Both the position numbers and the translations under genes were made by a program. Of a DNA stretch of 64,000 bases, positions 15,566 to 60,552 are shown piece by piece (within the stretch, counting starts at the first letter, position 1; each line of letters opens with the position of its first letter). The notes below the pieces were generated by a model. It saw nothing but the letters and a program-made list of their open reading frames with translations, did no database searches and was not told the DNA's origin. The DNA is from Eukaryota sp. TZLM1-RC (taxonomy: Eukaryota; Protista; Metamonada: BaSk clade), in NCBI GenBank assembly GCA_040285825.1, contig JAUPSS010000002.1, positions 620,001-684,000 of the forward strand. Reading direction: 5' to 3'.

Positions 15566-16300
15566 TCTGAGTGATATTGTTTATAACAGTGGAAGAAGTG
15601 TCCTTTTTACACTGATGAAGAGTGACTGAGTTTTTGGGCACTGTGATTTGCAACTCAAGTGCTTATTTTCAGTTTCGCAACATCCACTCACCAGTATCTC
15701 AAGTTGCAAATCATCAGTAAAAGAGTTAGTAACACACTACTGTGTAGTTTCTTCGACGAGTACTACAAAGTCAACATCGAAGGTCTTATCATTGTGGATA
15801 CACCGTCATCTTTCAATGGCTCATTCCGATCAGGATAGATCAGGGCAATGCGTATTCTAAAGTTGTCTCTCAAAAATAATCATCATCATTGTTAAATAGA
15901 CGTCTTTGTACACAAACACGGCGGGCAACCGCGGAGTTCTGGCCATAACTCTGCACACTTTCGAAAACAAACACCATCTCCAAACTCACTCCGAAAGCAC
16001 ATGAGCGAGGTTGTCCCGGATCAACTCCATCAACAGGATAAATTGGATTGTGCTCAAAGGGAGGTGTTTTTGCGGACCCTCAAGGTCTCTTTTTCTTTGC
16101 AACACCCTTCAGTTTAACATTTTCAGTAATCTTACTGGCAGACGAAACATTGCTCATCTCTGCTTTAGTTCTCCTAGTCCTTGGTGTCCTTTCTTTAAAT
16201 TCAGAAAAGGTAACAAAAATCCCGTTAAAATCATTTCTAATTGTTATCTTTCTGAACTTCATTTTCTCATCAACATTATTGATACCAACGAATGAATGAG
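15566..16300 (-). pseudogene. Fanzor-like relic (WED end, RuvC-I, right end) abutting the pepD ATG
   Basis: ITIRNDFNGIFVTF, basic linker, then GVDPG (16014-16028), later LSCKSQC; last ~75 nt homologous to the Fanzor ends at 19061-19135 and 39893-39963. Confidence 0.6.
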
Positions 16301-17109
16301 GAAAAGTTTTAAATACCCTATTCAGACTGATCAGTGCAATAAATAAAAGTTTATTTCGGCAACAAACACATTTTAAAACTAAACAACAAACCTTAACTAA
16401 AGCTTTTACCTATTCAAACCCCATCAATTGAATGACGGGAAATTTTCGCTATTCATCTGAATAGCAACTCTCTTGTTATAAAACTTTGTAATGTTATTCA
16501 ATTTGGAGTTATAAAACGAAAAAGAGCTTTTAACAACGAAAATACAATTCTGTTCTTCCAAACCAAAAAATCGAATGTACGACCACTTTCCTTGAGAAGT
16601 TTTTCCTACATCATCTAGATTTAGATGTTAAATTGAATTGAGACTAGAATTGAGACCTTCAGTTCCAAGGATACCAAAAATAGAAATAACAATTGGGACA
16701 ATTTGATGTTTCTGCCTCTTGTTTTAAATATGAAATTGATCATGATGGAAAATCATATTTTGTATTGTTTCGCTTTAAAAAGCTGAAGGAATTAAATATT
16801 GGATATCAGTATGAATCACAACAGAACTATGGAACGGTTTTCCCACAGCAGATGTTTCACCTTTAAGAAAGGGCAACATGCATGTTTTCGATAGTACATG
16901 TGGAGTTTGAAGAAATAAATTTTTAGTGTTTAAAAATTCTTTTTGGACATTAATAAACTAGTTTGTTTTGATAAATAGTTGAGCTATAAATTGTCAAAAC
17001 AAGTTTATCCAATCTGCAAATCTTTCAGAAAACTCAAATATGACATTTCTATTTTTATAGCTTTTAATTTATCAAATACCGAATAAAAAATCATCAAATA
17101 CACAACTAA

Positions 17110-17590
17110 AGCTCCACATCCTCTGAACCTACCTCTCCTAAACCGAAACAGTTAACTAATGAAAGATTCAGAAAATTTACTGAAAGACGAAAGTGAATCA
17201 GAAATTAATTTCACCATTCCCTGAAAAAAAGAAAATACAATCCTGTTTTGCCAGTAAACACGATTGAAAATTTTTCCACTCCTTTCCTTTACAACTAGAT
17301 TGAAATCCTCAAGGAAAGCCAAAGCAGCCTTACCTGAATATCCAAGCAAGGAAACAAAGAAACACAAATTATATTGGGCATGAGAATTTTCATTGAAAAA
17401 AGAAATAGGTTTCGCGTATTGAGCAATTCTGTTATTTTCTGTCAGCAGAAAGAGAATTCTGAGTTGATGAAATGTTCGTTAAAAGAATTACAAGGGTCAA
17501 TGGACATGGTATCTAAAATGGTAAAGCTTCAATTCAAGCCGGGAACAACCAAAACACCTCTTGTCAGACCCATAGAAGGTATATTGTAGC
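17110..17590 (-). mobile_element. CRE-like family B 3' fragment
   Basis: Homologous to 62708-63200 (VVKERSGKIFNRVYWQNRIVFS). Confidence 0.75.
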
Positions 17591-18502
17591 ATTTCTGCAA
17601 CCACTGATAGAAGCACACGAAGTGACTGTTGACTTTACTGCAAACTAAACCACCATTGTGTGGAATACGATGAACATGATTAGCAATAAATCAATTTTGC
17701 TTCCTAACAATTGTGACAAAAATCTTGCACATAATTAATCTTCTGGAAACGAAGACTACAGAGAAAAAAAACAGAACCAAAAAAAGAGGACCAGTAGATC
17801 GAAATATATGATTAAAGCTTAAATTAAAACAATGTCTTATCATATTCAATTTAACGTGCTTCTGTACATCCAGTTTCATCATTATTTTCTAAAAACAAAC
17901 CAAATGACTCATAGTATTAGATGAATTCATATTGGCTTTGAATTCAATTCCTTCAAATGTCGCTAAATTTGAAGAATTTGAAAGTGAAACATATTTGTGT
18001 TAGTCTAAAGCCAATTTCTGGGTCAGTTCAATGAAGGTTAATATTTTTATTGAATCTTTCACACTTATTTACCTTTGTTAATAACGTAGTAGATCCCAAA
18101 AGGTTGGAACATTGTGTAGAAAGCCAAATTTTCGTCCTAGCACTGAGAAAAGTATAAAATGAAGAATGTTCCATTTTCAGAAGCAATCAATGATATAAAA
18201 GCCCCAGTAGAACGTATCAAAAAATAATCACTTGCACTGGTGGGTTTTCCAGAAATTGGTGCTAATGTATTTTAATATTAAATTTGAAAACAAATTATAA
18301 TGGTTTGAATTATATTATATGAATAAAAACTTGAATAATGCTTGGTAAGTTGCACTATCAACCAATTAATTATCAAAAAATGTTCCATCAATCAAAATCT
18401 ATTGATGCATAATGAACTTCAGGATAGAGAGACATTTGGCCTGCAATCACATCGCATCAATAATGAAACAGACACCAAATAAACATATTAAATAACAATA
18501 AA

Positions 18503-19060
18503 CTAATCGATTCGAACCCTTTTCCTTGACACTACAGATTCAGCTGGAACACTAAAAGGAAGATCTCCGTATGAAGATCTTCGAGATAAACTGATTGGAG
18601 TAGAGGAGTTATCATGAGAGAGCAGGATATCATTACTAAAACGAACAGGGCACTTGGACTTTGTGTGTCCAAAATGACTACAAACAGAGCACCTATAGGC
18701 TCCACGCTTGTTGATTGACGACGTATCTAATGAACACATTTTGCGGTGCAAACAAGCAACTGTATTTAAGAGCTCTGGAACGTGTTTGGGAACGATAATG
18801 TAATCCCTGAGTCCAGATTTCTTGAATACATGAACAGGAAGAAGTTGAGTTAATTTCTCAATGGCTTCAGCTTCTGGGAGTGGAGATGGTATGGATAGAA
18901 TACGTCTAGCATCCGAAAGAGTAACCACATTACCTTGGTGGATTTGGGTGGCAATACGAAAGAGTTTGATGCTGTGATCATCAGAGTTCTGTTTAAGATC
19001 ATTTACCAACTCTTCAATTGATGTATAAGAACAGATTTTTTGAGTACAATCATAACTCAT
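18503..19060 (-). CDS. Small CCHC zinc-knuckle protein (paralog of 22762-23322)
   Basis: Intact ORF; CSVCSHFGHTKSKCP; N-terminal domain shared with the paralog. Confidence 0.75.
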   Translation of the reverse strand: MSYDCTQKICSYTSIEELVNDLKQNSDDHSIKLFRIATQIHQGNVVTLSDARRILSIPSPLPEAEAIEKLTQLLPVHVFKKSGLRDYIIVPKHVPELLNTVACLHRKMCSLDTSSINKRGAYRCSVCSHFGHTKSKCPVRFSNDILLSHDNSSTPISLSRRSSYGDLPFSVPAESVVSRKRVRID

Positions 19061-19650
19061 TCTTACAGATGATGTCTAAAACAATGAAATAAGTGTCCTT
19101 TTTAAACCAATGTAGAGGGACTTGGTTTTTGAGAAGAGGAAGATTTTCTCGAAAACTTTTTCTTTGAACCTTCATCAACGTTGGCTTTCTGTAGGTATAC
19201 CGGTCTATCTCCACCTTTTACATGTACTTCCATCACTGCCAACATATTTAGCCAAGCATTTCGGTCTCTATTCTACAAACTTTCACATGATTTACACATG
19301 GTAAGCCCATGACGAATAGACATCTCATGCCTCTTCTATGGCCTTGAGTTTCTGCACCATTAGAGTGTTTCAACTGTTTTCTCCGCTTTCTTACATTTGC
19401 AATAACAACTGGTTCGAAACTCATCAATCAAAAGACCTTATAACCAGCCTTTTTAAACAAAATTCTCAAACCTTTTCCTTTCGTAGGTTCTTTGAATTTC
19501 ATATGTTTTCGTTGTTCCCAGTCTCCGATTGCAATAACTACTTGGCTGGCATCACCAATTACTTATTTGAATCTCTGAATCATTTTTGCCTCAGATCTTG
19601 TGTGATTAATCTCAGCCCACAATCGTAGTTTCCTGAATATTTTTTAATGA
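19061..19650 (-). pseudogene. Fanzor1 C-terminal relic plus right end, abutting the CCHC gene ATG
   Basis: Translates (with stops and a frameshift) FRKLRL..IN..RSE.KMI..FK, IGDWEQRKHMKFKEPTKGKGLR.LFKKAGY, IDEFRTSC.C.C, HGLTMCKSC...NRDRNA.LN, GGDRPVYL. Confidence 0.88.
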
Positions 19651-20290
19651 TAGACAATACTATTCACATATTTCTTTTGTTTAATATACTCCATTAATCT
19701 ATCAAACCTGCAACTTTTGGAATTGAATTGGGATACAGTTGCTTCTTATTCTGCTACAGATTTAGTTTTTTGATTATTGTTACTCAAATCTAATGAGTTA
19801 TCAATTTCTTGGGGAATATTGATTTCTTGAGGTACTTTTCCTCTTAATAAACTAATTGTTCTTTCAGTCATTTGATTAATTATACTGCTGTTTAAATCCA
19901 TCATTTGTTGTTGCTCATCAGATGGTTCATAATTGGATAGATCAATCACTCTACCAGTAGAGTTACTTATTGTGATAAGAGTGTGATTCCCTCTCTCATG
20001 AGCGAAAGAGGAAGATTGATAGTCTTTAAAGGAAGGTGGAAAAATTTGTTGAAAAACATGCAATTGCAGTTGGAGTTGTTCATTGAACCTTCTCAACAAC
20101 ATCAACATGCTTTTTGCATACTTTCAACATAAACACAACAAGGATCTTTAATTGTTCCACGCGAGTAATAATTGTCACATAGCCAATTGTCTTTAGGTTA
20201 TTCAATGTAGATCTAAATCATGGTTTTTAATAGAATTACCTCTTTTAGTGTCAAATGTACAGAAAGTTGCCTCAATGGATTTTCTGCAAC

Positions 20291-20881
20291 TACACTGCTG
20301 GCAGTAATTAGTCTCACTGAGACTAATTATGTCTATGGCATCACTCAAAATCATCAAGTGAGACTAATTATGTTCTCAATTAGTACCATAAATTTTCATG
20401 TTTTCAACCGTTTTTTCTTCAAGCTCAGAACAAAAATGTATTTATTCAATAAAGATAATACTAATTACCAATATTACTAATATTACTAATATTACTAATA
20501 CTAATACTAATACAAAGGTAATACTAATTCCAATTCTTCATTACATATACTTATGAATAACCGCTTTTCGGGGTCTCCTCTTCTCCAGGCATTTGCCCGC
20601 ATTACTCCTCTTGAATAAATTGAATAGATTGTTGAATAAGTGAGAGTACATGTTGGTTTAGTTTATAAAAGAGTATTGTTTTTCGAAACAGCACACTACA
20701 AGGAATATTTGCTGAGGATAAAATTAGTCTCACTGGGAAATTAGTATCACGACAAAATTAGTATCACGACAAAATTAGTATCACGACAAAATTAGTCTCA
20801 GTGAGACTAATTATGGTTTGTGTTAGGAAAAATTCGAGAACAAAATTAGTCTCAGTGAGACTAATTACTGCCAGCAGTGTA
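20291..20881. mobile_element. Tc1/mariner-type MITE with TA TSD and repeated subterminal motifs
   Basis: TA|CACTGCTGGCAGTAATTAGTCTCACTGAGACTAATT ... perfect inverted copy|TA; internal 17-bp tandem AAAATTAGTATCACGAC and an (ATACTA)n tract. Confidence 0.85.
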
Positions 20882-21006
20882 GATAAATGCTGAAATCGCA
20901 TTCATTTCAATTGCACACTGAAGGCACTTATAATTTGATAATTAACCAATCAACAAACCAAAAAACACAGAAAAAAGTATTCTATATTAGTTTATTTTTC
21001 ACTGAA

Positions 21007-22636: not shown

Positions 22637-22761
22637 GTTGAAGAAGTTGTGGATGTAAAGTTGAAAGTGTCTTTGTAATTCAACCAACTTCTTTAACGAA
22701 CTTCAATTCAACGACCACAGCACAACAGTGACTTATCCCACTGTTTTAGACATCATTATTG

Positions 22762-23322
22762 ATGAGCTCGGAGGATATTCGCTTCCCAAAGAGGATAAGC
22801 TTTCCCAACCTTTTCGACGCCATTACTACCCTTTCTACAAAACATGATGCAGAAAGCACCATTTTCCTTGACATAGCACGAAAGATTTATAATGGAGATG
22901 TTTTTACTCTCTCTAATGTTCGACAGCTACTTGGACTTCCTACCTCCATGACTGAAAACGAAGTAATAGATAAGGTTGTCAACTCACTGCCCTTATATGC
23001 TTACAAGGAATCTTGGATGTCTGATTTTATATTGACCCCCATGGATGTTGCTGAACAAATTTATTTCATATCACTTCTTTATGAAAATACCAATATGACT
23101 ACAACTGCAATTCGGAGAGGCCCTTATAATTGTTCAATATGCCAGAAGTCTGGACATACGAAAGCCAAATGTCCTGAACGAATTAGACAAAATATCCCGA
23201 CCACTAGCATAGGTGGACGTAGGAAACGTGTGAAAAAGGAAAATACCACTCCGCCGACTCATTCAGCAGAGTCAAGAACTTCCCCACTAGCATCTCCTAG
23301 GTCGAATACTTCCAATCTGTAG
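22762..23322 (+). CDS. Small CCHC zinc-knuckle protein (paralog of 18503-19060)
   Basis: CSICQKSGHTKAKCP; IARKIYNGDVFTLS vs IATQIHQGNVVTLS in the paralog. Confidence 0.75.
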   Translation: MSSEDIRFPKRISFPNLFDAITTLSTKHDAESTIFLDIARKIYNGDVFTLSNVRQLLGLPTSMTENEVIDKVVNSLPLYAYKESWMSDFILTPMDVAEQIYFISLLYENTNMTTTAIRRGPYNCSICQKSGHTKAKCPERIRQNIPTTSIGGRRKRVKKENTTPPTHSAESRTSPLASPRSNTSNL

Positions 23323-23457
23323 TATCAATTCGACTTTTTTAGTTTTTTGTTCCTTGTATATTATATTTTGTTTTAGAAGTAAAACATGCTTCATTAAACA
23401 AATTTTCAAACAAAGTTGCGTTTATAAACACAAAAATTGGTCTAAGAATATACACTT

Positions 23458-25305: not shown

Positions 25306-25612
25306 AAATATTTTCAAAAAAAATACTTAGTCTATTTTTTTATTATCATCAGTTTTGACATTTCAATTACAGTGATCGAACCGTAATTTGGGTAACTATT
25401 AACTATTGACATCCTTTCATATTTGCTATTGTATGAAAATACTAGTTTGCGTTGATGTGAATCCTTCTCTTAATTCAACTATGTTTACTCTAAAATATTG
25501 GTTTCATTTTTTTGGACAACTCTATTATTGAACCAATTTTGTTAGCAGTTTTGTCTATAATGTAATGTGCTTGGAAATGTATGGGTTTGTACCTGCAACA
25601 GAAGAATGTGTT

Positions 25613-25684
25613 GCCTCGGTGGTCTAGGGGTATGATTCTCGCTTAGGGTGCGAGAGGTCCCGGGTTCAAATCCCGGCCGAGGCC
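25613..25684 (+). tRNA. tRNA-Pro (AGG)
   Basis: Cloverleaf: acceptor GCCTCGG/CCGAGGC, anticodon arm CTCGC-TTAGGGT-GCGAG, TTCAAAT T-loop, followed by TTTT. Confidence 0.96.
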
Positions 25685-25732
25685 TTTTAGCTTCTGCTAG
25701 TGTATGATAAAATACACAAGAATATAATATCT

Positions 25733-27219: not shown

Positions 27220-29591
<2,372 letters not shown>

Positions 29592-29823: not shown

Positions 29824-31113
29824 TCAACCAATAAGACGTATTTTTACATTTTGATCTACATCATAAACATCCATAGTCCCTGATATTTTAGGTAGGAAGC
29901 AACTTAACTCCAACCAGCCAGAAACCCCTACAAATAAAGCTTTATCTAGAATTTCATAAAAATTAGATTCAGAAGGAAAAACAAATAGATTAGGACAACT
30001 TTGACAAAATCCACAATACACGTAAACATCTCTACTAATTTTCCCAGCTTCAATGGATTGAACAGGATATAATACTCTCTGACTCCTCAGTACAGAGAAG
30101 CACTGATCTCTGTTGGCAGAATCCAAATCTACACCAATTAAGGACATTCTGATAAAATTCACATCAATCGTAAATGGATTGCTACAAAAAACAATCTTCT
30201 CTTCCTTCTCTGCCCTTGTTAAAGCCAATTTGATTGCGTTAGCCATTGGTTTAAGTCGCGGCGGAAGAGGTACAAAAGAAAGTACGTCATCTAAAGACCA
30301 ATGTGAAGCAGGAAAAGACTCTATTATTCTGAACCTACAATCGAGGGTTGGAACAATAAAGAGTCGACATGGACGTTCCAAAACCAAAGCAAATAGCTCC
30401 CAAAGGAAGCAAACTTCTGAGGTAAATGGGCCATAAAGAATAACTACATCAGGAGTATTTAAAGAGAATTGTTTCGTGAAGTGAGTTATGTTTGCAACGA
30501 AATCAGAGAATTTAAGAGCCCATAGCACCATTGGTGTATTATTCAAGACATTTTGAACTTGAGAAAGAAAGTTTGGTTTGGGATAGGGAAGAGGTGCCGG
30601 GGGAGGGAACACCAATCTAGTAACTGAGAGCTTGTTGTGTTCCAGGAGAGTACCATTGACCAAAACAATCATGGAAGGAAGAATAAATGGGAAAGTGTTG
30701 AGAGAGGTCAAGTTGAGAAGATGAGACTGTGGGGGATGAGGGGGATCAAAGGAAGGGATGGACAAACAGTAGTCGCCGTTACTGTCTAGGAATATCCAAC
30801 CAACTACCCATCCTGTAGAATTTAGTGAGAGTGATGACTGTATTTGGGATTCATTAAGTTTCGCAGCTTGTAGAAGCACTGGAAGTAGGGTAATACACCT
30901 TTGTGTTAAATAATCGTAATCATCAGACCTATGTGCAGAGGGTCCTTTGACTTTCACAAAGGATGGAAGATTTGTACCATTGCAACCTGAGTGAGAATGT
31001 TGTGGATTTATTAGAGAAGATGAGGATTCGGGTAAGGAAAGCACAGTGCGTAGAGCCTTTGTAGTTGCAAAACGTTCCTTAACTGAAGGAACATTGAGGT
31101 GTTCATTCAACAT
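29824..31113 (-). CDS. Divergent DNA polymerase alpha B-subunit-like protein (calcineurin-like phosphoesterase fold)
   Basis: PDVVILYGPF, FIVPTLD, SNPFTIDVN, PNLFVFPS motifs in the order seen in POLA2-type subunits. Confidence 0.55.
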   Translation of the reverse strand: MLNEHLNVPSVKERFATTKALRTVLSLPESSSSLINPQHSHSGCNGTNLPSFVKVKGPSAHRSDDYDYLTQRCITLLPVLLQAAKLNESQIQSSLSLNSTGWVVGWIFLDSNGDYCLSIPSFDPPHPPQSHLLNLTSLNTFPFILPSMIVLVNGTLLEHNKLSVTRLVFPPPAPLPYPKPNFLSQVQNVLNNTPMVLWALKFSDFVANITHFTKQFSLNTPDVVILYGPFTSEVCFLWELFALVLERPCRLFIVPTLDCRFRIIESFPASHWSLDDVLSFVPLPPRLKPMANAIKLALTRAEKEEKIVFCSNPFTIDVNFIRMSLIGVDLDSANRDQCFSVLRSQRVLYPVQSIEAGKISRDVYVYCGFCQSCPNLFVFPSESNFYEILDKALFVGVSGWLELSCFLPKISGTMDVYDVDQNVKIRLIG

Positions 31114-31164: not shown

Positions 31165-31280
31165 CCTGAGAATTTCACATAGTGTGAATATTGAAAATAT
31201 ATCCCCAATAATTGTGTAAACTTCTCAACACCAAGGGTTAGTATACACTAAACACCTTGGAAATACGTTGATTAAAACAG
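31165..31280 (-). ncRNA. Putative Fanzor omegaRNA scaffold / right end (copy A)
   Basis: Non-coding, conserved with 49406-49521, long stem TGAGAAGTTTACA/TGTGAAATTCTCA; identity stops after TTCTCAGG. Confidence 0.7.
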
Positions 31281-33100
31281 CTACTGTTGTCTTCTTAGAC
31301 GTCTCACACGCCTTGGCCTTCTGAATGGTTCTGGCCTGGTACCAGTGAAATACTCACTAATTACAATCTCCAGCTGGTTTCTGGAGGCTGAGATGTCCCT
31401 AGACCAGTTGGTCTGACATCGAGGGCAATCGAACTTAGCGTTATTTACCCTTCCGTCATCATGATAGATCTTTCTATGAAAGACCTTACAGCAATTCATT
31501 TTTGCTGAGGTCATAAACTCGTCCCCCACTTTGACGCTTTCAAAGTGTTTTTGTATTTGATTGAGAAATCTTTTCTGGATAATTTCACAGATTGACAAGA
31601 TGGACTACCGCCACCATTGCCGAACCAAACTATAGTGTTTCTTCCTTCAGGCAAGCGTTTAATTTTGTTAATCAAACTAGTTATTCTTTTTTGCCTTCGT
31701 ATGAAGAAATCAAACTTATTCCTTCCCAGCTTTTTTCTTGCACCACGCTGCATATTCAGGCTCTTTCTCAGATTTAGAAACATAAGGTAAACTTATTTCA
31801 ATCAGATACTCTTGGAAGCTCTGAGCGGAATAAGTGTCAGGAGTTGCTTGAGTGAGAGGAGGAGGGTGATTTAGTCTTCGTTCTTTTGGATTCAGTAGCA
31901 GTCCAGAACGTTCAAAAACAGTAGCAGATTTTCGGAAAGAACCAGTAGTCTAACCACAAAGATTGCTGTGGTTGGGATCAATTGCTACAAAAAACAAATT
32001 TTCATCAGGACCTGTGTAATTGGGCTGTTGTTCCACTGGTAACCGCGGTCTTCTCTGTGGATTTGCTGTTCTATGGACATTGGATTTTCATTTCCTTTCA
32101 GAGTTGTGAAAATCATAGTTTCCAGAGCCTCGCCTGGGCTCAAATTCCGCTTTACTTGGCTTATTATAAGTTTTTTTTCCTTGGTATACTTAAACCGCAA
32201 GGAATCACCACTTGAAAAAATGGTGTAGTTAATCAATTTGGATTTATTAAAAAACCGATAAGGGTTGTTCAGAAGCTCTTTGTTTGCATTTAGTTTTGTG
32301 AAATAAGCTTCTGCTTTTTTAGTCAAGCTGCAGAAGCATAAAGACCAATTGGACAGTGTAGAGAGAGTACCTTTTCATCACATCAGGGCAGTTATCTTCT
32401 AAAAAGATAAAATATTCAAGCCAGATTAAAATATTGTTGCCGCAGACTCCATATCAATGGGAAATCATTCGTTTCTTATTGAATTTTCGAACAAATTTTC
32501 ACCACCACCAATATAGGCGTTGGCTGTCATATTGAGCCAATGGACCAAGATAAGCTGGTGTATTTCTTGATACCGATGCAAAATCGACTCATCTAACTGA
32601 ATCTCTTGAAGTACACAGTCGGCGTACTTCTAGAAATTGAGCACATCTCTTGAAAAATTGCGTTTCCAGACAACAGGGCCGTTAGCGAGCAACTAACAAA
32701 AGGCTTCTGGCAGTTGGATGGCTCGACTGTCAAAAAGAGTGGAAAGACACCAAAATCTACCACCGTCGGCTGAGGTGGTTTCATTCAGCAATCCGCAGGC
32801 CGAAAAGTGCTGAGCAAGGTGTTGCAGCGCTTGGTACACCAAAGGATGGTTCTCAAATGGCCTCCTTTGTTTGGGCTCACTTTGGCAAACAAGATCGACA
32901 CAGAGGTTCCAGAGCTAGCTTTGAATAAGCCACACAGAGTGTTTTGTGTATTGAAGCACAAAGAGTCTTGCTACGTGAGTAGCATGAGCTCCAATACTAC
33001 CAAGAACTTGGAACTGGCGTTCTATAGCTTCTTGTGCCTCTGAGTCGAAGAACTGGTTTGCCGACGCTTCCACAGTTGTAGTTTGTAGAACGTTATCCAT
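31281..33100 (-). pseudogene. Full-length but frameshifted Fanzor/TnpB-like nuclease, family B copy A
   Basis: RuvC-I AIDPN, IVWFGNG, RuvC-II DEFMTS, C..C knuckle CPRC, RuvC-III RDISASRN, tail GTRPEPFRR; roughly 600 codons. Confidence 0.85.
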
Positions 33101-33375
33101 AGCCGTCAACACAGAACGGAAACAGTCAGAAATGATTGAAAATTTGTTGAAATCAATCAATGTTATAGTTGTCAATTCTAAGTAAAGTTAGTTACAGGTG
33201 TTTATTAATAATACATATCGTTCGACATTACTTTCTGAATTGTTTTCCTTTCTTCAGACAAGAACTACATCCTACAAAAGTTGGTGAGTGGAGTTTGGTT
33301 GGGTTGTCATCATTTTCCAAACTCGCAATTGAATTTCATTTCATCACTTTTAATTTTCGTTCACCTTTAGTAATT

Positions 33376-33996
33376 TACACTGTTGGCAGTAATTAGTCTC
33401 ACTGCCAAATTAGTCTCACTGAAAAATTGGCCCGAGTGAGACTAATTTTGTCCAATGACCATTCAAAATCGACTTTGTGAGACTAATTTTGTCCTGAGTT
33501 TCTTAAACATTTTTCCAGTACTTTTTTCAAAAACTTATAAAATTTTTTACCAATCATTTTTTATTCAACATTTTTTACAATGCAATGCAAACTTCAAAGG
33601 AGAAATGCCTCCTGTTTGTGATGAAGATATCTGGGAAGATGTGAGTGACGACGATGATTTCACTGAAGTACAGGGATTCGACGATAATTCGGAGGAGCAA
33701 ACTCAAGTAACCGAAGATTTCATAACCCAACAGGAGATTACTGAGCTGAAGGATGAAGAAGAGAATGAACGTTATATTTTAGACTAAATTGTGTGCTTTT
33801 TATTGATAAAGATGTTGTTTGTCTAATGGTCAAAGGAAATAAGGTTGTGACAAAATTAGACTCACTGCAAAATTAGTCTCAGTACAGAATTAGACTCACT
33901 GCAAAATTAGTCTGAATGAGACAAATATTGTCCGGAAAGCACAAACAATTCAGTACAAAATTAGTCTGAGTGAGACTAATTACTGCCACCGGTGTA
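33376..33996. mobile_element. Tc1/mariner-type MITE related to 20291-20881
   Basis: TA|CACTGTTGGCAGTAATTAGTCTCACT ... AGTGAGACTAATTACTGCCACCGGTG|TA, multiple AAATTAG(T/A)CTCA repeats; different interior with acidic ORF 33605-33787. Confidence 0.82.
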
Positions 33997-34957
33997 GTTT
34001 CGACTAAATTTTCATCTTCGACAACATCCCCTTTGGAAACTCAACAAACTGGACAACCTTCAGTAGTCACATCTCCATTTGGTCAGCAAACAAGTCATCC
34101 TTCCACAACAGGAGCTTTTGGTGTTCAACAAATTGGTCAAAGTTCAGGAGGTGTATCGCCTTTTGGTCAAGGAACAAACCCATTTTCTACTACAGAAGCT
34201 TGTGTTCGACATCTTGTGTCCGAATGGCTTTCTTTCTTTGGGTTTTGACATACTGGTTGAGTTCTCAAAGCTGAGGTCGCTCTACAGGACACCTTTTCCA
34301 GAGATGAGCTCAACCATTCAACCTATTCGTTGAAAGAAACACCATCTGAACCTCTTCTCCTTACTCTACTTTCCTTTTTGGACGCTGTAGACACTGCACC
34401 ATTACCAGAGTCCACTCCAACCGAAGTCAAAGAAATCCTCAGTTCATCTCAATCCCCGGCAAAAGTTCTAGCCCAGAACATGTATGCTCAGTTTCCCCAC
34501 CTATCCAGTAATCCTCTTCTTCCCCTTTTCTCCTGTCCATGGTGACCATGAACGGGACTCGCCAGTTGAGATTACTAATGAACAGCCTCTTTCCGAAGTG
34601 ATCCCTTCCACTCCTTCTCCGCCCTCTGCTCACCCATCTCCTCTTCCTCCGTCTCCGCTACCTTACGAAATGCAAGAAGAAAAAGAAGATGAACAAGTTG
34701 ACTCGTTTCTTCTCCTTCGATCCGCTTCTGCTTCTAGTAACAATAACACAGTGTTTGGCGAATCAGAAGGGTCTGGGTTAAAGTCTTTGCCACCATTAGA
34801 AAAGTTTCCTAAAAGTTTGCCTGAGTTCAAGGTCGTCAAGCAAAGTCCAAAGGAAAGTGTCAAAAATGCTCTTGATTTTGACCTTGATGTTGATTTTTCT
34901 GTTTTTTCAGACGATCACGGAGTTATTCCTACAGCGAAATTTAACGCTTTGAATTAA
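33997..34957 (+). pseudogene. Chimeric pseudogene: FG-repeat-like segment joined to a LisH/FOP-like protein
   Basis: PFGQQ/AFG/PFGQ repeats, then LVSEWLSFFGF*HTG*VLKAE..EPLLLTLL; two in-frame TGA and a frameshift near 34530. Confidence 0.4.
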
Positions 34958-39020: not shown

Positions 39021-39489
39021 ATTCCAGTTTTTAAAAAACGCCATTTATCGTATTTTTATTGTACATTATTCAAGAAATTTGGTGGTTCAACCGATAGTCT
39101 TCCATTCATATTTTTTATATGGTATATTTCGGTTTTGACTCACATGATCTTTTGCAAGACTTGTGTCCATTTTCCTATTTTCTTAATCGATCAAATCTGT
39201 ACGAGCTTGTGGTTAAATCTTGTGAATATTGGTCGTTTAATTGAAATTTCTATTTTACCACATCACTGAGAGAACTTTCAGGTTATTAACAAGTGAAGAA
39301 GCTGAAAAACCAATATTCCCCATGAAATTGATTACTCATTAAACTTGGGTATAAACGATCACACAACTATAACTGTAGCAGAACGGAGATCAATTCTATG
39401 AAGTGAAAATAGATTTGCTGGTGATATCTATCAACAATGGATATTTAGGAAACTGAGATGGTAGGCTGAAGCCAATAGAGTTCCAATGA

Positions 39490-39963
39490 GTAACTGGTAA
39501 CCTCAACGAAGTTGTTATTGGGGATGGAGACTGGAAACGACGAAAACACTTGAAATCAAAAGAACTTTCCCAAAGGTAAAGGTTTGAGAATTTTATTCCA
39601 TAAGGCTGGTTATAACTTTCCAAGTCTTTTTAATTGATGAGTATCGAAACAGTTGGTGTTGTTTCAATTGTAAGAAATAGACAATCAGTTGAAACATTTA
39701 GATGGTGCAAAAATCCAAGTATAAGGCGAGAGGTGTCTGTTAATCACTTTCTTCACATGTGTAAATCATGCGAAAGTTTGTGTATAATGATCGAAGTACT
39801 TGGTTTCAAATGATACCAGAGATAAAAGCACATGCAAATGGCAGAGACAGATTGATTAGAATGCTGTGATGGAACTTTCAAAAAAGGTTTCTTCCAAAGA
39901 ACTCATTCTATCTACATAAGCGTAAAGAGTACTTATTCCATTGTTATTACAACTTTTGTAAGA
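39490..39963 (+). pseudogene. Fanzor1 C-terminal relic plus right end, abutting the MVK ATG
   Basis: Homologous to 19061-19550: GDW..RKHLK.KE..KGKGLRILF.KAGY, IDEYRNS..C..C, HMCKSCESL; ends TGTAAGA|ATG. Confidence 0.82.
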
Positions 39964-41076
39964 ATGGCTCATCATCACAAAATACAGGCCTCTGCACCTG
40001 CAAAAGTGATAATATCAGGTGAACATGCCGCTGTTTATGGACTGTCAGCACTGGCTGCTACACTGTCTTTTCGAACCTCAGTTTTACTCTCCTCAAACCG
40101 TGATTTGTCGTCTGAGCCCCAGGTTACAATAATTCTCGATGGAGATCGATATAGTTTCAACACACAAGAACTATCTCAATACATTCCAAACAAGGTTAAA
40201 CTATCCGATTCATCTCTGCAACAATGCATACTTTCTCTGGAACCAATTATTCCCAAAGATCGAGAAGATGTTAGACCATTAGTGGTGATTTTACTTTTAT
40301 TGACTCATATTATTAGCTCTATAATTGAACAGTTTGACCCATTAAACCTTGAAATGACCATTGAAATTGAATCAAATGTACCACAAACTATCGGACTGGG
40401 ATCATCAGCAGCCCTTTGTACAGCATTATCCACTGCTTTTCTTGCTTGGTTTGGGTTCATTTCACTCGATCCTACCGCTGAAGACTTGCAATTGATAACC
40501 AAGTGGTCTAGAATTGGAGAAATTGTTTTTCACGGAACACCGTCTGGAATTGACACGGCAACTTCAACGTATGGTAAGTTTGTTGCGATTGAAAAACATC
40601 AGCCTAGATCAATAGTTTATCCTCCTTTTAAAGTTATGGTGATTGACTCTCGCAAGCGCAAACCGCCAGGGGGAACTGCAGCAGCAGTGGCAATGGTTGA
40701 GAGAAGAGTGAAGAGTGACAGGACGGTTATAAACAAACTAGATCAAATACATGGTATAGTAAAGTCAATTCTTGCATCGTCCCCTGCTGGTCTCTCTCTA
40801 CCTGATCTTGCTGAGCTACTTGACCAGAATCATTTGCTTCTCAACGACATTGGAGTTGGTTTTGAAGAAGCAGAACAGATACGAGAGGTCTGTAGCATGC
40901 ATGGGTTCGTTGCAAAGATCACAGGATCTGGGCTGGGAGGTTGCTTACTGGCAGTTCAAAAGGGGATTAAAAGTGATGTAAATGCATTGAAAAGGGACTT
41001 AGAATTAGCAGGATTTATTGCTTATGAAGCTACTTTAGGAGGCCCTGGAGCCGAAGTATCTGTCATTTTTGATTAG
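39964..41076 (+). CDS. MVK: Mevalonate kinase (GHMP family)
   Basis: APAKVIISGEHAAVYG, GLGSSAA, HGTPSGID, KITGSGLGG. Confidence 0.9.
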   Translation: MAHHHKIQASAPAKVIISGEHAAVYGLSALAATLSFRTSVLLSSNRDLSSEPQVTIILDGDRYSFNTQELSQYIPNKVKLSDSSLQQCILSLEPIIPKDREDVRPLVVILLLLTHIISSIIEQFDPLNLEMTIEIESNVPQTIGLGSSAALCTALSTAFLAWFGFISLDPTAEDLQLITKWSRIGEIVFHGTPSGIDTATSTYGKFVAIEKHQPRSIVYPPFKVMVIDSRKRKPPGGTAAAVAMVERRVKSDRTVINKLDQIHGIVKSILASSPAGLSLPDLAELLDQNHLLLNDIGVGFEEAEQIREVCSMHGFVAKITGSGLGGCLLAVQKGIKSDVNALKRDLELAGFIAYEATLGGPGAEVSVIFD

Positions 41077-48171: not shown

Positions 48172-49398
48172 TCAATCAATTTCAATCACATCTTCTATAG
48201 TTGACCGTAACCCACATCCTTCTATTAATTTACTTGTAACAAATGCCTGTAATGTGCAAGTGTAAAACGTATCAGCTGAAGTATGTTGAAGCCAGGATAA
48301 GACAAGCTCAGTTTGACTCGTTAATGAACCATGGTTTTCAAATAATTTAACCTTATTTGGGAAAACCTTCCGAGAAATAGACAAAAACATGTACATTGAA
48401 GCATGGTGAATACCACAGAACTGAGTAAACTTGGAAACCACAATCATAAGAGGATCAACATCGGAAAAGGAACTCAATAAATAATCACAAAAATCTCTAC
48501 ACATCTCCACGTCTTTGTTAATTAAAGATTCCTTCTTTATTGACATGTAAATATTAAGTATCTTTTGAATAATAATAAACGGGTAATTGAAATTGGCTAA
48601 ATGAGAGCTTAAAACACCAAAAAAAATGTTTATATTTGGAAAATCTCTCTTTAAAGGCCAAGATTTGGTTTCAAATGTACTTCTCAAGAATTCAAGACAA
48701 TTTAGATCTTTAGGGTGAAGCGTCAAGTGATGGAAAACTCTTTGCATGTCAATAGATGATTCCGTATTGAATTTACAAGATAAAAAAGGCAACTTAAAGC
48801 TAAAATCTTTTAAATTTAGGGCAAAATCGGTCAAATGATTGGTTTGTTTAGCACTCAACCTGTATCTTGGACTAATTCTCACCATGGAATTACACATACA
48901 AGCATTAAGCAGTCCATTACTGTGGTTATGGAAAGAAATTGTTGGTGTGGGTTTGTGGTGAAGACAGGGACTGACACTGGGCTTTCGCTTTCTTTTTAGT
49001 TTCATATTGGTCAGTTTGGTGTTAAAGCATTTGAAAGTAATTGGTTGTAGCTTTGGATAGATGTATGGGATATTGACAACAACTGGTGTGTTGAAACCTC
49101 GGGATGAAGAAGAAATGTTGAGGAGAACATCGATATGTGACAATGAGGGAGCTTGTAGCAAGACAACAGAGCGAGGAGGAGAAAAGAAATGGATTGGACC
49201 AGCTGGAGAGAGATAATGCTTGGATGTGTAAGTTTTTTGAGTTACCAGTTGTTCCAGAGCACGACATGAGATTGATGAATTGAGGAACAATGGTACCAAA
49301 TTGTGTCGAAACAACAAGGGTACTATACGTTGGTCACAACAGCAGGTAATTTTGTGACGGTAGTGCTTGAAGATGAACTTCAAGAACTGAGGTGACAT
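48172..49398 (-). CDS. Hypothetical protein (start MSPQFLK)
   Basis: Uninterrupted ~408-codon ORF; first ATG lies 7 nt after the conserved Fanzor end. Confidence 0.6.
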   Translation of the reverse strand: MSPQFLKFIFKHYRHKITCCCDQRIVPLLFRHNLVPLFLNSSISCRALEQLVTQKTYTSKHYLSPAGPIHFFSPPRSVVLLQAPSLSHIDVLLNISSSSRGFNTPVVVNIPYIYPKLQPITFKCFNTKLTNMKLKRKRKPSVSPCLHHKPTPTISFHNHSNGLLNACMCNSMVRISPRYRLSAKQTNHLTDFALNLKDFSFKLPFLSCKFNTESSIDMQRVFHHLTLHPKDLNCLEFLRSTFETKSWPLKRDFPNINIFFGVLSSHLANFNYPFIIIQKILNIYMSIKKESLINKDVEMCRDFCDYLLSSFSDVDPLMIVVSKFTQFCGIHHASMYMFLSISRKVFPNKVKLFENHGSLTSQTELVLSWLQHTSADTFYTCTLQAFVTSKLIEGCGLRSTIEDVIEID

Positions 49399-49405
49399 GT
49401 ACTCA

Positions 49406-49521
49406 CCTGAGAATTTCACATCAAGTGGATATTGAATAAATATCGCCAACACTGATGTAAACTTCTCAGCACGAAGAGTTAGTATACACTGAACACCTTG
49501 GAAATACGTTGATGAAAACAG
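49406..49521 (-). ncRNA. Putative Fanzor omegaRNA scaffold / right end (copy B)
   Basis: Homolog of 31165-31280 with the same stems and a different inner-stem sequence. Confidence 0.7.
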
Positions 49522-51552
49522 TCACTGCTGTCTCCTTAGCGCCTTACACGCCTTGGCCTTCGGAATGGTTCTGGCCTAGTACCAGTGAAATACTCACTGA
49601 TTGCAATCTCCAGCTGATTTCTGGAGGCTGAGATGTCCCTTGACCAGTTGGTCTGACACCGAGGGCAAATGAACTTAGCGTTATTTACCCTTCCCTCATC
49701 ATGATATATCTTTCTATGAAAGACCTTACAGCAATTCACTTTTGCTGAGGTCGTAAACTCGTCCCCTACTTTGACGTTTTCAAAGTGTTTTTGGATTTGA
49801 TTGAGAAATCTTTTTTGGGGGATTTCACAGCTTGACGAGATGGACCATTACCACCATTGCCGAACCAAACTATAGTGTTTCTTCCTTCAGACAAGCGTTT
49901 TATTTTGTTAATAGAACTAGTTAGTCTCTTTTGTCTTCGTATGAAATCATCATACTTATTTCTTCTAAGTTTTTTTTCTTGCACCACGCTGCAGGTTTCT
50001 ACACATAATTTAAGTATATTCAGGCCCTTTCCCAGATTCAGAAACATAAGGTAAACTTGTTTCAATCAGATACTCTTGGAAGTTCTGAGCGGAATAAGTA
50101 TTAGGAGTTGCTTGAGTGAGAGAAGGAGGGTGATTTAATTTTCGTTCTTTTGGATTTAGCAGTAAGCCAGAACCCTCAAATACAAGTGCATAATTTCGGA
50201 AAGAACCAGCAGTCCAACCACAAAGATTGGTGTGGTTGGGATCAATGGATACAAAAATTTTCATCAGGATCTCGATAATAGGGCTGTTCATCCACTGGTA
50301 ACCGTTGTTTGCTCTGTGGATTTGCTTTTATATGGACTTTACATTTTCTTTTGTTTTCAGAGTTATGAAAATCATAAATTCCAGAGACCTCTCGACTCAA
50401 ATTCCGCTTTAGTGGTTTGACTATATGTTTTCCCTGCCTTCTGGGTGAACATGAACCGCAAAGAATTTCCATTTGAAAAAAATTTTATATTTAATAAATT
50501 TAAATTTATCAAAAAATCGATCAGGGTTGTTCAGAAGCTTTTTGATTTCATTTAGCTTTGTGAAATAAGATTCGGCTTTTTTATCCCAACTGCAAAAGCA
50601 TGAAGACCAACTGGATAAAGGCGACAGAGTGTGTCTTTTCATAACCTCAGGCAGTTATCCTTTAGTGATGCCGTTAGGCAGAAATACCAAAGATGAAAAG
50701 AAGAAAAAAGAAAAGAGCTTTATTATTAGAAATACTTGTTCTTGAACAAGTGCCACGTCAGCATGTAAATTCCTCATCTGTCTACCAAGTTAGTTTATCA
50801 GTAACAACAACATTAGAAAAATACAATATCCAGTCCTGAAAAAAGATTGTGGCCGCAGTTTCCATTTTAATTTAAATCGTTGATTTTTGATTGAGCTTTC
50901 CAATAGATTTTGACCGTCAACAATATAGACATTTGCTGTCATATTCAGCCAGTGGGTCAGGATATGCTGGAGCATTTCTTGCTACTCCTGTGAAATTGAC
51001 TCATCCGACTGAACATTTTGAAATACACACTCGGCGTATTTTTTGGTCTTGGGCAATTAAAACACTGGGCACAGTTCTTTCAACAACTGTTTTTTCAAAC
51101 CACAAAGCCGTCAGCCAACAACTGGCAAAAAGCTTCCCTCAGTTGAATGGATCGACTTTCAATTAAATTGGAATAGCACCAGAATCTGCCACCGTCGGCT
51201 GACGTGGTTTCATTCAGTGAGTGCCAAGGCGAATAGTGCTGAACGAGATTTAGCAGCGCTTGAAAAACGAAAGGATGGTTTTCGAATGGCCTTTGTTTGG
51301 GTTCTGATCACAAACAAAGTTCGAAACAGAGGCTCCAGAACTGGCTTTGAGTAAGCCACATAAAGTGTTCTGGGCATTGGAGTACAAAGAGTTGTGCTAG
51401 ATGAGTAGCATGAGATTCAATACTAGCGAAAACCTATGGAACACCAGTTCCTCGTGTTTTTGAGCCAAAGCACTGGTTGACCGACGGTCCCACAGTTGTA
51501 GTTTGGAAAGCGTTATTATTATCAAAGCGTCATACATCAAATGGACAGCCAT
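49522..51552 (-). pseudogene. Fanzor/TnpB-like nuclease, family B copy B (frameshifted, contains a solo LTR)
   Basis: SIDPNHTNL, IVWFGNG, DEFTTS, CPRC..RDISASRN, GTRPEPFRR; collinear with 31281-33100. Confidence 0.85.
50666..50812 (-). mobile_element. Solo LTR with 4-bp TSD TTAG
   Basis: Absent from Fanzor copy A; termini TGTTG...GCATCA like the LTRs at 10492/13122; TTAG at 50662-50665 and 50813-50816. Confidence 0.75.
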
Positions 51553-53260: not shown

Positions 53261-53504
53261 ATTAGAGACTGTTAGTATTTGATGGTTATAACAGAGTTTG
53301 TCAGTAATTAGATATGATTTTGTACCTAGACCATGGAATCAGAACATGGTGGATAAGGAGACACGTGATGTGGCCAACTATGTTATGTGCATATGGTCAC
53401 CAACATGATGTTACACTAAAAATCTGTTTTGCTTGATTGATTTCATACAAATTTCGGTAATCTTAAGAGGTTACTTCCTTCTGACATCTCTGTGCGTTTA
53501 GACG

Positions 53505-54902: not shown

Positions 54903-54952
54903 ACCTAATTAAGTCACTTTATTTCAATTACAATAATATTTTTTTGGTTATT

Positions 54953-57468: not shown

Positions 57469-57640
57469 TGCAGGGAAAATTGGACAATTCCCACTAAAAT
57501 TCACTTGTGGTTTTCGTTTTGTGATGCTTGACGAAAATATGCATTTCAAATGAAAACCACAGACTTCTCTGTCATATACTATTTGACACTCACTGCATCT
57601 GTCAGGACCATGCTTGCGTTTTCTCCGCCATGCACCAACT
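57469..57640 (-). pseudogene. Minimal TnpB/Fanzor-like tail plus hairpins abutting the MSH4 ATG
   Basis: HGPDRCSECQIVYDRE reading, then long hairpin 57506-57561 and a GGGAATT..AATTTTCCC stem, ending TGCA|ATG. Confidence 0.5.
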
Positions 57641-57799
57641 TGACTATGATAGATTTTAGAAAAAAGGGATCAAGAGATCTTTGATTTATTTATTAATTGA
57701 TTGCTTTGATATGAACCAATCACCTGGTCCCTTTAACATGTTTTGAATGAAACAACTAAATTGAATCCAACAGCAAATTCCACAAAAGTCCAAACTAAA

Positions 57800-60319
57800 C
57801 TAAAACCCCAACGACAGTTGTACTTCCTTTTCCCTTTTTTCACTGCCTCCATCTCTTTGAGAGGAACTTCTTTTCCTCCCGGAAACAGAGAGTGATTGGA
57901 AGTGTGGATCCTCATGTGAGCCAACTAAGAGGAAATCACCAGATTTGCCAGAAAAAGTACCAGAATTATGTCTGACTGATTTCCAGTTAACCCCCCTTCT
58001 TGGTGCTGACAAAACTTTCATCAATTCAACAGGAATTTCTGTTTGAGCTGATAATACATCAAAGAAATTGTCAATATGGGAACAATAAGCAAGAATCGAT
58101 GTCGAAACATTCTTAGATCCACTATCCATTTGACCAACAAATACGAAATTTAAAGGCTTTGTGCAAGGAATCGGAAGATTGACTATACTAATGTGACTAG
58201 TCTTTGCTAGTTTAGCACTTTTTAGAGATATTGTTGATTTTGGGTGAAGTAGTTGGTTAGGCCAATTGTTTTGGTTAAATGTCATCAACCTCACATCATC
58301 ATTTAAATCAAAACCAGCACCAATAATCAAATCAGCCAAATCACAAACCCTTTCATCTTTATTGACCTGAACAGCAAACAATGGGTCAAAAGTAACGTGA
58401 CCAAGATTGAAATCTGTTGTAAAAGGAAAGGAAAAGTTTCCATTATACTTTGAACCACCACGCCTTCCTTTACAGTTAATAGGTTTTAATAAACGTTGCC
58501 TACAGTGATCACAGATGCTACTGTTGACTAATGGACTGTTATTGGTAGATATTCCCAGCAAAGAACAGTGTACTTCATAATAACCAGTGTCAACAGCTTC
58601 ACCAACCTCCAAAAACAAAGTTCCACAATCTGATTCCACCATATCCTCACAGTCCAAAACGCGACCTGCAGAAACCCATTGAGTTGCAGACCTTAACCGT
58701 AAGGGGATAGAGTCTGGGATATGGAAAGTTTGTTTGAGTTTGGTTAGGGTTTGTGCTACAGTCAATTCTTGGGGCAAATCAAGAATAAAGTCCTGGTCAA
58801 ACCCTGGAATAGCTGAATTATCGAATGGTGCAATCAAAACAGAAGGTGATTGATGATTTGATTGGTTATCTTCAACTTCCACCACATCACCTTCCATTGA
58901 TTGACCTTCACTCTCCCAAAAATCTAACGGGGCAACTATAAAGAAAATTTCCTTATCAAGGGTAAATAAAAGAGAATCCATCAAGGAAGTGTAATCTCCA
59001 AGACAACTATAGGTTGCTCCTTGGCCTTCAGTTTGAACGACAGGTTCAGAGATTAGAAACAAGCACTGACCGTCTAAAATACTCAATCCAGAGAGAGAAA
59101 AAGCTTCAGTTATGGTAAATTGATTAGAAACCGAAACTTTCCTTCCAATAAAATCTGAAAAATGGAAAAATACCACATCTGTAAGTGAGTTAAACTCTTT
59201 TCTTTGAAAGTCAAGTTGCTGATTCTTTACGGTTATTAATTCCTTCAAATCGGAAGGTAGATCATAATCAAGAGGGGTTGATTGAACAGGATAAAATTCC
59301 ACACCATTGTAACTATTCCTTTCGAGATTTGCATAAAACAACATATAAGCACATTCAGTACCGGAGAAAAACTTTTTTAAATCAAATAACTTTTTTTCAA
59401 CATTACAATCATCAAAAGAGACAAAAACTTCTTCATTTATAATATAGCTCTTGTAATGGCCTCCATAAGCCCCACCTTCGTGCACAACAAACCCAAATAA
59501 GTGGTATTCCTCGTTGTTTATTATAAGATTGTTGGGAAATGAAACTTTCCTTGTTGATTTGCGTCTAATTTCTGAATTCCAATCAAAAGAAAATCTATTA
59601 AGAACAAATGAAAACATTTGTGGCAGTTTAGAAAAGGAAACCGACCTTGATGATGAGTTTGATTGATTACAACAGTCACAAACATACTCCTCAAGGAACT
59701 CAGGTGATGACATATGTTCGATCATTGATTCAAGGGAACTGGCAGTTGAAATAGAAAGAATTACTTCACAAAACTGTTCATAATTGACCTTTTGAGAACC
59801 GCACTGATCACAACAAATACTGTACTCAAATTCACCAGAAAAGAGATTTGACAGAGTTCGACCAACAGCCTGGTAATTTGGGGGAATGGTAGAACTGGAT
59901 GGGGATAGAGAATCAAAAAGAAGACGGAAAAACTCTTGGGAATCATGCTGAACAGTCAGGTCTTCCTCGCTCCATTTGAAGGCATTAAACAGGTTTTGGG
60001 GGTAAATAGACTGTGCATTGAGGCAGTGCATTTGAGCAAACAGTTCACGGAGAGCATTTATTACGGTGACGGATTGGTGTGAAGATTCAGAAGGTGATGG
60101 TAAATTGAGAAGTGAGTTTCGAAATGGTGTGATATGGTATAAAAGTTGGAGAGCAGCATTGACAAAACAAGATGCTCCAGAAGAGTCTAATCCACAAGAC
60201 ACCCCTTGTTGACGAGGTGGTGGAGGAGGTGGAGGCTTGGAGTTGCAAATTTGTATACTGTAGGCAAGTTCAGCATCTAAATCCCCTGTAAACAGAGCCC
60301 CAAGAAGGTTGTCAGTCAT
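57800..60319 (-). CDS. Ubiquitin-specific protease (C19; USP40/47-like)
   Basis: Cys box GLDSSGASCFVNAALQ, QHDSQEF, His box VVHEGGAYGGHY, FDD. Confidence 0.88.
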   Translation of the reverse strand: MTDNLLGALFTGDLDAELAYSIQICNSKPPPPPPPRQQGVSCGLDSSGASCFVNAALQLLYHITPFRNSLLNLPSPSESSHQSVTVINALRELFAQMHCLNAQSIYPQNLFNAFKWSEEDLTVQHDSQEFFRLLFDSLSPSSSTIPPNYQAVGRTLSNLFSGEFEYSICCDQCGSQKVNYEQFCEVILSISTASSLESMIEHMSSPEFLEEYVCDCCNQSNSSSRSVSFSKLPQMFSFVLNRFSFDWNSEIRRKSTRKVSFPNNLIINNEEYHLFGFVVHEGGAYGGHYKSYIINEEVFVSFDDCNVEKKLFDLKKFFSGTECAYMLFYANLERNSYNGVEFYPVQSTPLDYDLPSDLKELITVKNQQLDFQRKEFNSLTDVVFFHFSDFIGRKVSVSNQFTITEAFSLSGLSILDGQCLFLISEPVVQTEGQGATYSCLGDYTSLMDSLLFTLDKEIFFIVAPLDFWESEGQSMEGDVVEVEDNQSNHQSPSVLIAPFDNSAIPGFDQDFILDLPQELTVAQTLTKLKQTFHIPDSIPLRLRSATQWVSAGRVLDCEDMVESDCGTLFLEVGEAVDTGYYEVHCSLLGISTNNSPLVNSSICDHCRQRLLKPINCKGRRGGSKYNGNFSFPFTTDFNLGHVTFDPLFAVQVNKDERVCDLADLIIGAGFDLNDDVRLMTFNQNNWPNQLLHPKSTISLKSAKLAKTSHISIVNLPIPCTKPLNFVFVGQMDSGSKNVSTSILAYCSHIDNFFDVLSAQTEIPVELMKVLSAPRRGVNWKSVRHNSGTFSGKSGDFLLVGSHEDPHFQSLSVSGRKRSSSQRDGGSEKREKEVQLSLGF

Positions 60320-60552
60320 TTTTTATTTGTTGAGTATGGGACTGATTTTTTAGAAGTGGGGAATTCCCCATTACACGATCAATTTTCGTGTGGAATAATT
60401 ACAAAAACTATCTACTACACAAATACTGAGGCCTTTCATTACCACTCATTCTGGTTTCAGCAATTGCAAACATATTCAGACAAGCCAACTTATTTCTATT
60501 GAAAAGCTTTGTTGAGCCTTTGTTACTGAGTTTGCAACTCAAGAGATGATTG
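60320..60552 (-). pseudogene. Fanzor1 C-terminal tail plus 88-nt structured segment directly upstream of the USP ATG
   Basis: HLLSCK...LFNRNKLACLNMFAIA...GNERPQYLCSR* (stop 60408-60410); stems ACACGA/TCGTGT and palindrome TGGGGAATTCCCCA. Confidence 0.72.

Follow-up and report, generated by a model that had tools for sequence, protein, structure and literature searches.

Right ends of Fanzor1-like elements dock at co-oriented gene starts in Skoliomonas

In characterised Fanzors, the sequence immediately beyond the right end of the element serves as the guide (PMC13565253). Among the Fanzor1 elements described so far, CRe-1, CRe-2 and CRe-3 of Chlamydomonas and MCi-2 of Mucor (Bao and Jurka 2013, PMC3627910) keep their 3' ends intact while their 5' ends are variable or cut short; they have no transposase of their own, and their target duplications vary from 7 to 19 nucleotides (nt), with extra bases after the 5' duplication. 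The CRe elements are linked to Helitron2 and insert after TTTT, and no link to gene starts has been described for them. Insertion near RNA polymerase II (Pol II) starts, tolerated or gene-boosting, is known from Tf1 (PMC3553992) and the P element (PMC1592238), but these are driven by an integrase or a transposase, are regional rather than base-exact in their preference and are not RNA-guided-nuclease elements. Here we describe a 64-kb stretch (the window) of contig JAUPSS010000002.1 (assembly GCA_040285825.1, offset 620000) of the free-living protist Skoliomonas TZLM1-RC (TZLM1), whose assembly belongs to the Skoliomonas set published by Williams et al. (10.1101/2023.05.03.539051), in which dead Fanzor1-like elements of three families (A, B and C) end directly before host genes on the same strand, at a landing site that is predictable and, in family A, base-exact.

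The window (GC content 34%) holds about 16 host protein genes and is rich in pieces of CRE-type retrotransposons. In total, ~145 kb of TZLM1 DNA and ~130 kb from a cultured relative, Skoliomonas RCL, were covered. An element end was called docked when it lay <=60 nt from a co-oriented start. Sixteen Fanzor ends were counted in TZLM1 over five loci, 10 of them outside the window (chosen by Fanzor protein or met as bystanders). Thirteen of the 16 are docked, vs 1 of 26 CRE 3' ends in the same TZLM1 DNA (Fisher 3e-7), and the difference persists for the out-of-window ends only (7/10 vs 1/26, p 1e-4). In the TZLM1 DNA covered, placement at starts exceeds that of CRE retrotransposons, and non-random docking at gene starts, as proposed in a preliminary description of the window, is supported. 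The sole docked CRE 3' end lies ~45 nt from a co-oriented ATG (window 3578-3621). In RCL 6/10 ends are docked, including a copy predicted beforehand: a third intact RCL copy was found, ending 28 nt before a co-oriented ATG.

The docked ends of the window, together with a bare end motif, and the genes behind them are as follows:

15566-15636, minus strand: family-A right end abutting the pepD ATG (gap 0 nt); the C-terminal coding relic is gone
14090-15565, minus strand: host pepD (Xaa-His dipeptidase, Pfam M20), intact, with a full-length N-terminus
19061-20123, minus strand: decayed family-A Fanzor1 3' half and right end, 0 nt from the ATG of the CCHC gene
18503-19060, minus strand: host zinc-knuckle (CCHC) gene of 185 amino acids (aa), NCBI-called; the zf-CCHC match is weak
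22730-22761, plus strand: bare family-A end motif before the ATG (22762) of a CCHC paralogue, found with a position weight matrix (PWM)
31166-33349, minus strand: decayed family-B Fanzor (PF07282 above cut-off), 52 nt before the ATG (31113) of a PolB-subunit-like gene
29824-31113, minus strand: host DNA polymerase alpha/epsilon B-subunit-like gene, 429 aa, NCBI-called (PF04042 E 0.002, below cut-off)
39251-39963, plus strand: old family-A Fanzor1 relic and right end, 0 nt from the MVK ATG
39964-41076, plus strand: host mevalonate kinase gene MVK (Pfam GHMP)
49407-51517, minus strand: decayed family-B Fanzor (PF07282 above cut-off) ending CTCAG, 8 nt before the ATG at 49398
48172-49398, minus strand: host open reading frame (ORF) 49398, 408 aa, without a Pfam family, NCBI-called
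60342-60554, minus strand: family-C Fanzor1 tail and right end, ~22 nt before the USP ATG (60319)
57800-60319, minus strand: host ubiquitin-specific protease gene USP, 839 aa, NCBI-called (Pfam UCH E 3.5e-43)

The NCBI gene calls begin at the same ATGs for pepD, CCHC, PolB-like, MVK, 49398 and USP. The native start of MVK is further indicated by its Met1, which aligns with the N-termini of the orthologues from two other Skoliomonas species, RCL and GEM-RC; the pepD product matches PDB 2qyv (E 8e-85) with its residue 11 at residue 7, its N-terminus being ~4 residues longer.

The preliminary description listed seven co-oriented Fanzor 3' ends before genes, as all those of the window. Six stand, five as C-terminal relics on the strand of the gene (CCHC, PolB-like, MVK, 49398 and USP, by Pfam, hidden Markov model (HMM) or tblastn) and the pepD end by its right-end DNA; the seventh, before MSH4, is weak and was excluded from our count. 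An N-terminal half that has no 3' end had been missed, and the bare motif before the ATG at 22762 is additional. These remaining relics are:

57470-57624, minus strand: possible zinc-finger/RuvC-III relic upstream of MSH4, unconfirmed (7.7 bits)
7293-8525, plus strand: Fanzor N-terminal half, family-C-like, 3' end lost (HMM E 8e-21)
16000-16313, minus strand: weak family-B-like Fanzor middle relic with a DPG motif, upstream of pepD

The MSH4 candidate is the best unassigned match in the window (7.7 bits vs a reversed-sequence maximum of 5.4), and a Pfam search of it gave no hit. The N-terminal half matches a 723-aa Fanzor of RCL (tblastn E 8e-19) and is preceded by a faint, weak PolB-exonuclease relic, the whole unit spanning 6592-8525 (plus strand). 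The middle relic matches P0009 by tblastn (E 4e-4, small subject) and has an HMM E of 0.06.

The strictest placement is that of family A, the copies of which share ~75 nt ending in ATCTGT and four further bases, followed by ATG. Seven copies retain an intact end, three in the window (pepD, CCHC and MVK) and four elsewhere, and in 7/7 the register of the ATG is identical, with zero host bases between the element end and the ATG. The genes begun by six of these ATGs encode 185-494 aa, one being a RAE1-like WD40 gene, while the seventh opens 42 codons with no called gene. The base before the ATG is A in 7/7, vs 52% in ordinary genes, and AATG, which spans the junction, has its complement, CATT, within the end, a relation shared by two viral ends. 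The pepD end is 77% identical to the CCHC copy over 75 nt, in the same register, and 85% identical over 59 nt (E 3.6e-11) to a copy in L009. The CCHC relic (HMM E 5e-44) shows 74-77% identity to P0127/P0181, contains stops and is cut off in its 5' part near a repeat resembling a miniature inverted-repeat transposable element (MITE; 20288-20882); the MVK relic shows 73% identity to the CCHC copy (tblastn E 1e-12). The motif before the CCHC paralogue scores 20.7 with the PWM vs a shuffle maximum of 15.3 and matches the CCHC copy at 23/26 nt, the two proteins being only distantly alike; it sits in a 125-nt divergent spacer shared with CCT8 (22637-22761). The end motif thus persists without a C-terminal coding relic at pepD and, alone, at the CCHC paralogue. 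This persistence and the absence of any host base before the ATG point to a possible leader or promoter role, the family-A end probably supplying the leader of the gene behind it. The end was also considered as a general host promoter motif and rejected: only four sites were found, three of them family-A ends, and none before other starts. The pattern was absent from JGI metagenomes.

The family-B end, defined by three copies, is CTCAG, 8, 27 and 52 nt before the ATG, and a B-like copy ends 53 nt before its ATG. The structured right end of the PolB-like relic (31166-31280) terminates in CTCAG, and the relic is 90% identical to a copy in L002; that of the 49398 relic folds (z -2.8), the relic carrying an insertion of ~150 nt at 50660-50813. 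Family C ends near CAG, 22-36 nt before the ATG, and the USP relic shows 93% identity to P0161 and 87-92% to copies in L002 and L010. The earlier proposal that the right end replaces the 5' untranslated region therefore holds for family A, in which the leader is lost, but not for families B and C, which retain a host leader of 8-53 nt. CAG was also considered as an initiator target of the host and rejected, as T is not preferred after it, and the upstream regions of ordinary genes show only a modest TTCA/CAGT enrichment. Since host introns share the final CAG of the B, C and RCL ends, the elements might be tolerated as large spliceosomal introns removed from 5' leaders; this is hardly credible, because observed host introns measure 26-37 nt, the left end has no conserved GT, CAG closes the terminal stem of the predicted RNA and family A has no CAG.

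With regard to their proteins, the three families reported previously were confirmed, and the relics could be assigned to TnpB/Fanzor with HMMs (PF07282 above cut-off for family B, HMM or tblastn for the others). A TnpB-type zinc finger and RuvC C-terminus are indicated by PF07282 in B and by PDB Fanzor1 matches in A and C. Solved Fanzor1 structures were hit by family A and by a family-C relative from RCL (E 1e-19 to 1e-12); phmmer against PDB gave Fanzor1 and no Fanzor2 match for A and C, and family B found no match by sequence. A model of a family-B relative from RCL (P0008; predicted local distance difference test, pLDDT, 66) folds like SpuFz1/PpFz1 (Foldseek: SpuFz1 E 2e-8, ApmFz2 E 0.07). 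An initial Fanzor2 assignment was dropped, since phmmer and Foldseek favour Fanzor1. Families A and C thus resemble SpuFz1, PpFz1 and GtFz1 by sequence and the family-B relative does so by fold. The RuvC-I motif DPG, a Fanzor1 feature (PMC10711439), is present in family A (L009) and in the RCL family-C relative; family B and its relatives differ in having DPN. As in Fanzor1, the right end is short and structured and the RuvC-II Glu stands next to the zinc finger, six residues before it (E-x6-CxxC) in A and C and at the equivalent place in B, where the first Cys pair is degenerate. The RuvC-III Asp is present in A and B, whereas, unlike in Fanzor1, every family-C copy of both species has Asn (window 60411-60545 in the USP relic); family C is multicopy despite this (P0161, P0166, P0171, P0128).

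Every window copy is truncated or has stops and frameshifts. The PolB-like and 49398 relics are ~70-93% identical to a near-complete 548-aa copy elsewhere in the TZLM1 genome, the CCHC/MVK and USP relics match other TZLM1 fragments, and the RCL relatives of family B are intact and multicopy; intact RCL Fanzor ORFs have 592 and 605 aa. Unlike described Fanzor1 elements, long copies also encode 2A-like peptide motifs together with two domains, a Ulp1 (C48) protease and a PolB 3'-5' exonuclease, upstream of or fused to the nuclease (L005 5761-8733 and 14938-15966, minus strand; L011 6934-8846, plus strand; window 6592-7300, plus strand). Start docking was not found in the Fanzor literature searched, subscription journals lying outside the search. 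The proteins are ordinary-to-divergent Fanzor1, and the placement habit is the new part.

A second control comprised 96 dereplicated giant-virus and metagenome Fanzor1 relatives, among them the closest protein relatives of family A, on gene-dense contigs and with starts taken from crude ORF calls. The next gene is co-oriented in 62/96 and its start lies <=60 nt away in 34/96 (35%), and therefore about a third of such adjacency is generic. A start <=5 nt away was found in 6/96, with no fixed register; unlike the Skoliomonas ends, the viral right end is a conserved GGTGTA, apparently of terminal inverted repeat (TIR) type. TZLM1 docking exceeds the viral rate (p 8e-4; 0.04 for the out-of-window ends), and the excess is clear for the family-A register (p 4e-6; 0.002 for the out-of-window ends). 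The viral set (L013-L169) is itself asymmetric, 34/96 right ends vs 9/77 crudely called left ends lying <=60 nt from an outward-facing start.

The reading that we prefer, at a probability of roughly 0.55, is that insertion prefers the transcription-start/leader zone and is then filtered by selection. Several observations weigh against it. The window was itself selected because it showed the pattern, and RCL alone (6/10) is not above the viral rate (p 0.17). The earlier statement that no end is antisense to or downstream of a gene is true in the window, but no co-oriented gene follows 6/20 ends outside it (2/10 in TZLM1, 4/10 in RCL), the exceptions including a copy in convergent orientation and another that lies antisense within a fragment of SF3B1. 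Right ends of young family-A copies are not clearly better conserved than coding DNA, and no transposase ORF in the intact RCL copies and no targeting factor were identified.

An alternative is broad insertion without targeting (at any ATG-like site for family A), with selection in an ancestrally compact genome keeping only the short-spacer copies whose right end rescues transcription of the next gene. The viral relatives, 65% co-oriented and 35% within 60 nt on gene-dense contigs, fit this alternative, as do the RCL spacers (often under 200 nt), the in-register ATG with only 42 codons and the modest result of an orientation-only null (p 0.011; out-of-window 0.17). Nevertheless, the large, repeat-filled TZLM1 spacers take CREs freely, while young Fanzors (~90% identical) are still at starts, and harmless intergenic insertions, expected to dominate, are rare. 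We regard broad insertion as unlikely, albeit a serious contender, and infer targeting rather than selection alone.

Under the preferred start-zone reading, elements carrying Fanzor1, with a precise right and a variable left end, would insert mostly forward within a few dozen bases around transcription starts, the preference arising through open chromatin or a tethering factor and being sharpened by selection. In families B and C the CAG end would be joined to host leader 5-53 nt before the ATG. In family A, in which the end is joined to the ATG in a fixed register, a start-zone landing would hit the start codon and displace the native leader. Gene-killing copies would be purged; B and C survivors would be those leaving a short host core promoter intact, and A survivors those whose right end serves as leader/promoter, the last 30-75 nt being retained while the nuclease gene decays. 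More tentatively, and with doubt prevailing, this may be a transposase-less Fanzor1 lineage with its own means of finding Pol II starts, in which the family-A start codon would complete the terminal stem of the guide-RNA scaffold (CATT/AATG), the leader and promoter of many housekeeping genes would be replaced, and the guide would be read from the first codons. Covariation of the family-A end structure was not above that of shuffles. If right ends act as promoters, transposon DNA would drive a sizeable share of core genes (6/16 in the window), offering a fast route to promoter turnover. The intact multicopy nucleases of RCL make the question of how such elements reach new sites directly testable.

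The intact RCL copies also bear on the manner of movement. Their right end is precise and their left regions differ; one (L012) has an 11-nt target duplication and 10 nt of telomere-like filler at its truncated left end (0/300 shuffles), and another (L005) a 13-nt target duplication and 10 nt of filler. Duplications were seen in 2/5 young RCL copies, three showing none, and none is clear in TZLM1. Neither TIRs nor fixed-length target site duplications (TSDs) nor a transposase ORF were found, which distinguishes these elements from Mariner, MuDR or IS4-like TIR/DDE carriers. In the 592-aa RCL family the junction is preceded by TTG in 3/3 copies; a predicted rule of 2-bp TSDs was discarded for this family, since its third copy is truncated on the 5' side and what looked like the left end occurs elsewhere as a separate repeat. 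The end pattern and, where present, the duplications resemble those of CRe and MCi-2 and suggest copying that begins at the right end, the left side being sealed by end-joining; mobilisation would occur in trans by break repair or reverse transcription. Unlike for CRe, no Helitron was seen in the Skoliomonas DNA examined, no genome-wide search having been made.

A route through RNA, in which a reverse transcriptase copies host mRNA to its 5' end and then switches template to the 3' end of Fanzor RNA, the chimeric cDNA recombining into the locus to leave a sense junction at the transcription start site, would account for the sense bias, the leader-length gaps, the precise 3' and truncated 5' ends and the filler, and CRE reverse transcriptase is abundant. 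It seems rather improbable to us, as the junctions have no poly(A) tail, the target duplications and antisense copies suit a DNA-break route better, and the single family-A register would demand equal leader lengths in six genes.

Two further observations concern junctions. In L005 (9376-9407, 11888-12410) an 18-nt sequence after the right end of a 604-aa element is found again where a truncated SF3B1 fragment ends, a second Fanzor facing it there antisense, and 13 nt of it also precede the 604-aa left end. A candidate full-length family-A element of ~4.3 kb (L011 6169-10455, plus strand) has a possible 7-nt duplication beside the start of a divergent gene (weak, p 0.13).

As the guide is the flank past the right end, guides here would read leaders and first codons, and those of family A would all begin with AUG. 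The preliminary description concluded that the element therefore homes to gene starts. This does not follow: flanks of sister copies have nothing in common beyond the ATG, a guide taken from the flank after insertion would restore the same locus only, and family C is multicopy without the RuvC-III Asp. Steering to new gene starts by guides copied from old ones is accordingly very unlikely.

Orthologous loci were also compared. The MVK orthologue of RCL has a 75-nt divergent spacer upstream and no relic, and no relic was detected at that of GEM-RC; the insertion is lineage-specific, since both sites are empty. This bears on a second earlier suggestion, a domesticated network in which scaffold-plus-gene-start RNAs guide a Fanzor (possibly a nuclease-dead one, family C) to regulate host genes in trans. 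Folding persists in several right ends (z -1.6 to -3.8), and the family-C Asn in both species recalls the nuclease-dead TnpB repressors TldR (10.1101/2023.11.30.569447), which likewise have an altered RuvC residue and guides overlapping gene starts. TldRs, however, are intact domesticated genes with trans targets, whereas these are decaying multicopy elements with predicted guides matching their own flank only, no credible second target being found in ~140 kb, a small sample. Given also that the window copies are broken, that the MVK relic is not conserved across species and that family-A ends fold no better than shuffles, the network found no support and is exceedingly improbable.

Several minor features of the region were noted. 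The pepD product is near bacterial Xaa-His dipeptidases (PDB 2qyv, 3mru; E 1e-84), and lateral transfer of the gene (window 14090-15565) is possible. In L002 (1-21867) a unit of a Fanzor and an RBBP4-like gene is duplicated as large inverted repeats that are 98-99% identical, and the RBBP4-like gene copy seems frameshifted near its start. An Rfam scan returned tRNAs only, and the 3' end of a tRNA-Pro gene is separated by ~35-40 nt from that of a CRE (window 25613-25724). MITE-like elements with TIRs and 17-nt tandem arrays occupy window positions 20288-20882 and 33373-33999, each at the 5' break of a Fanzor relic, and an FG-repeat nucleoporin-like fragment with stops (window 33970-34957, plus strand) has lost its start at a MITE-like element.

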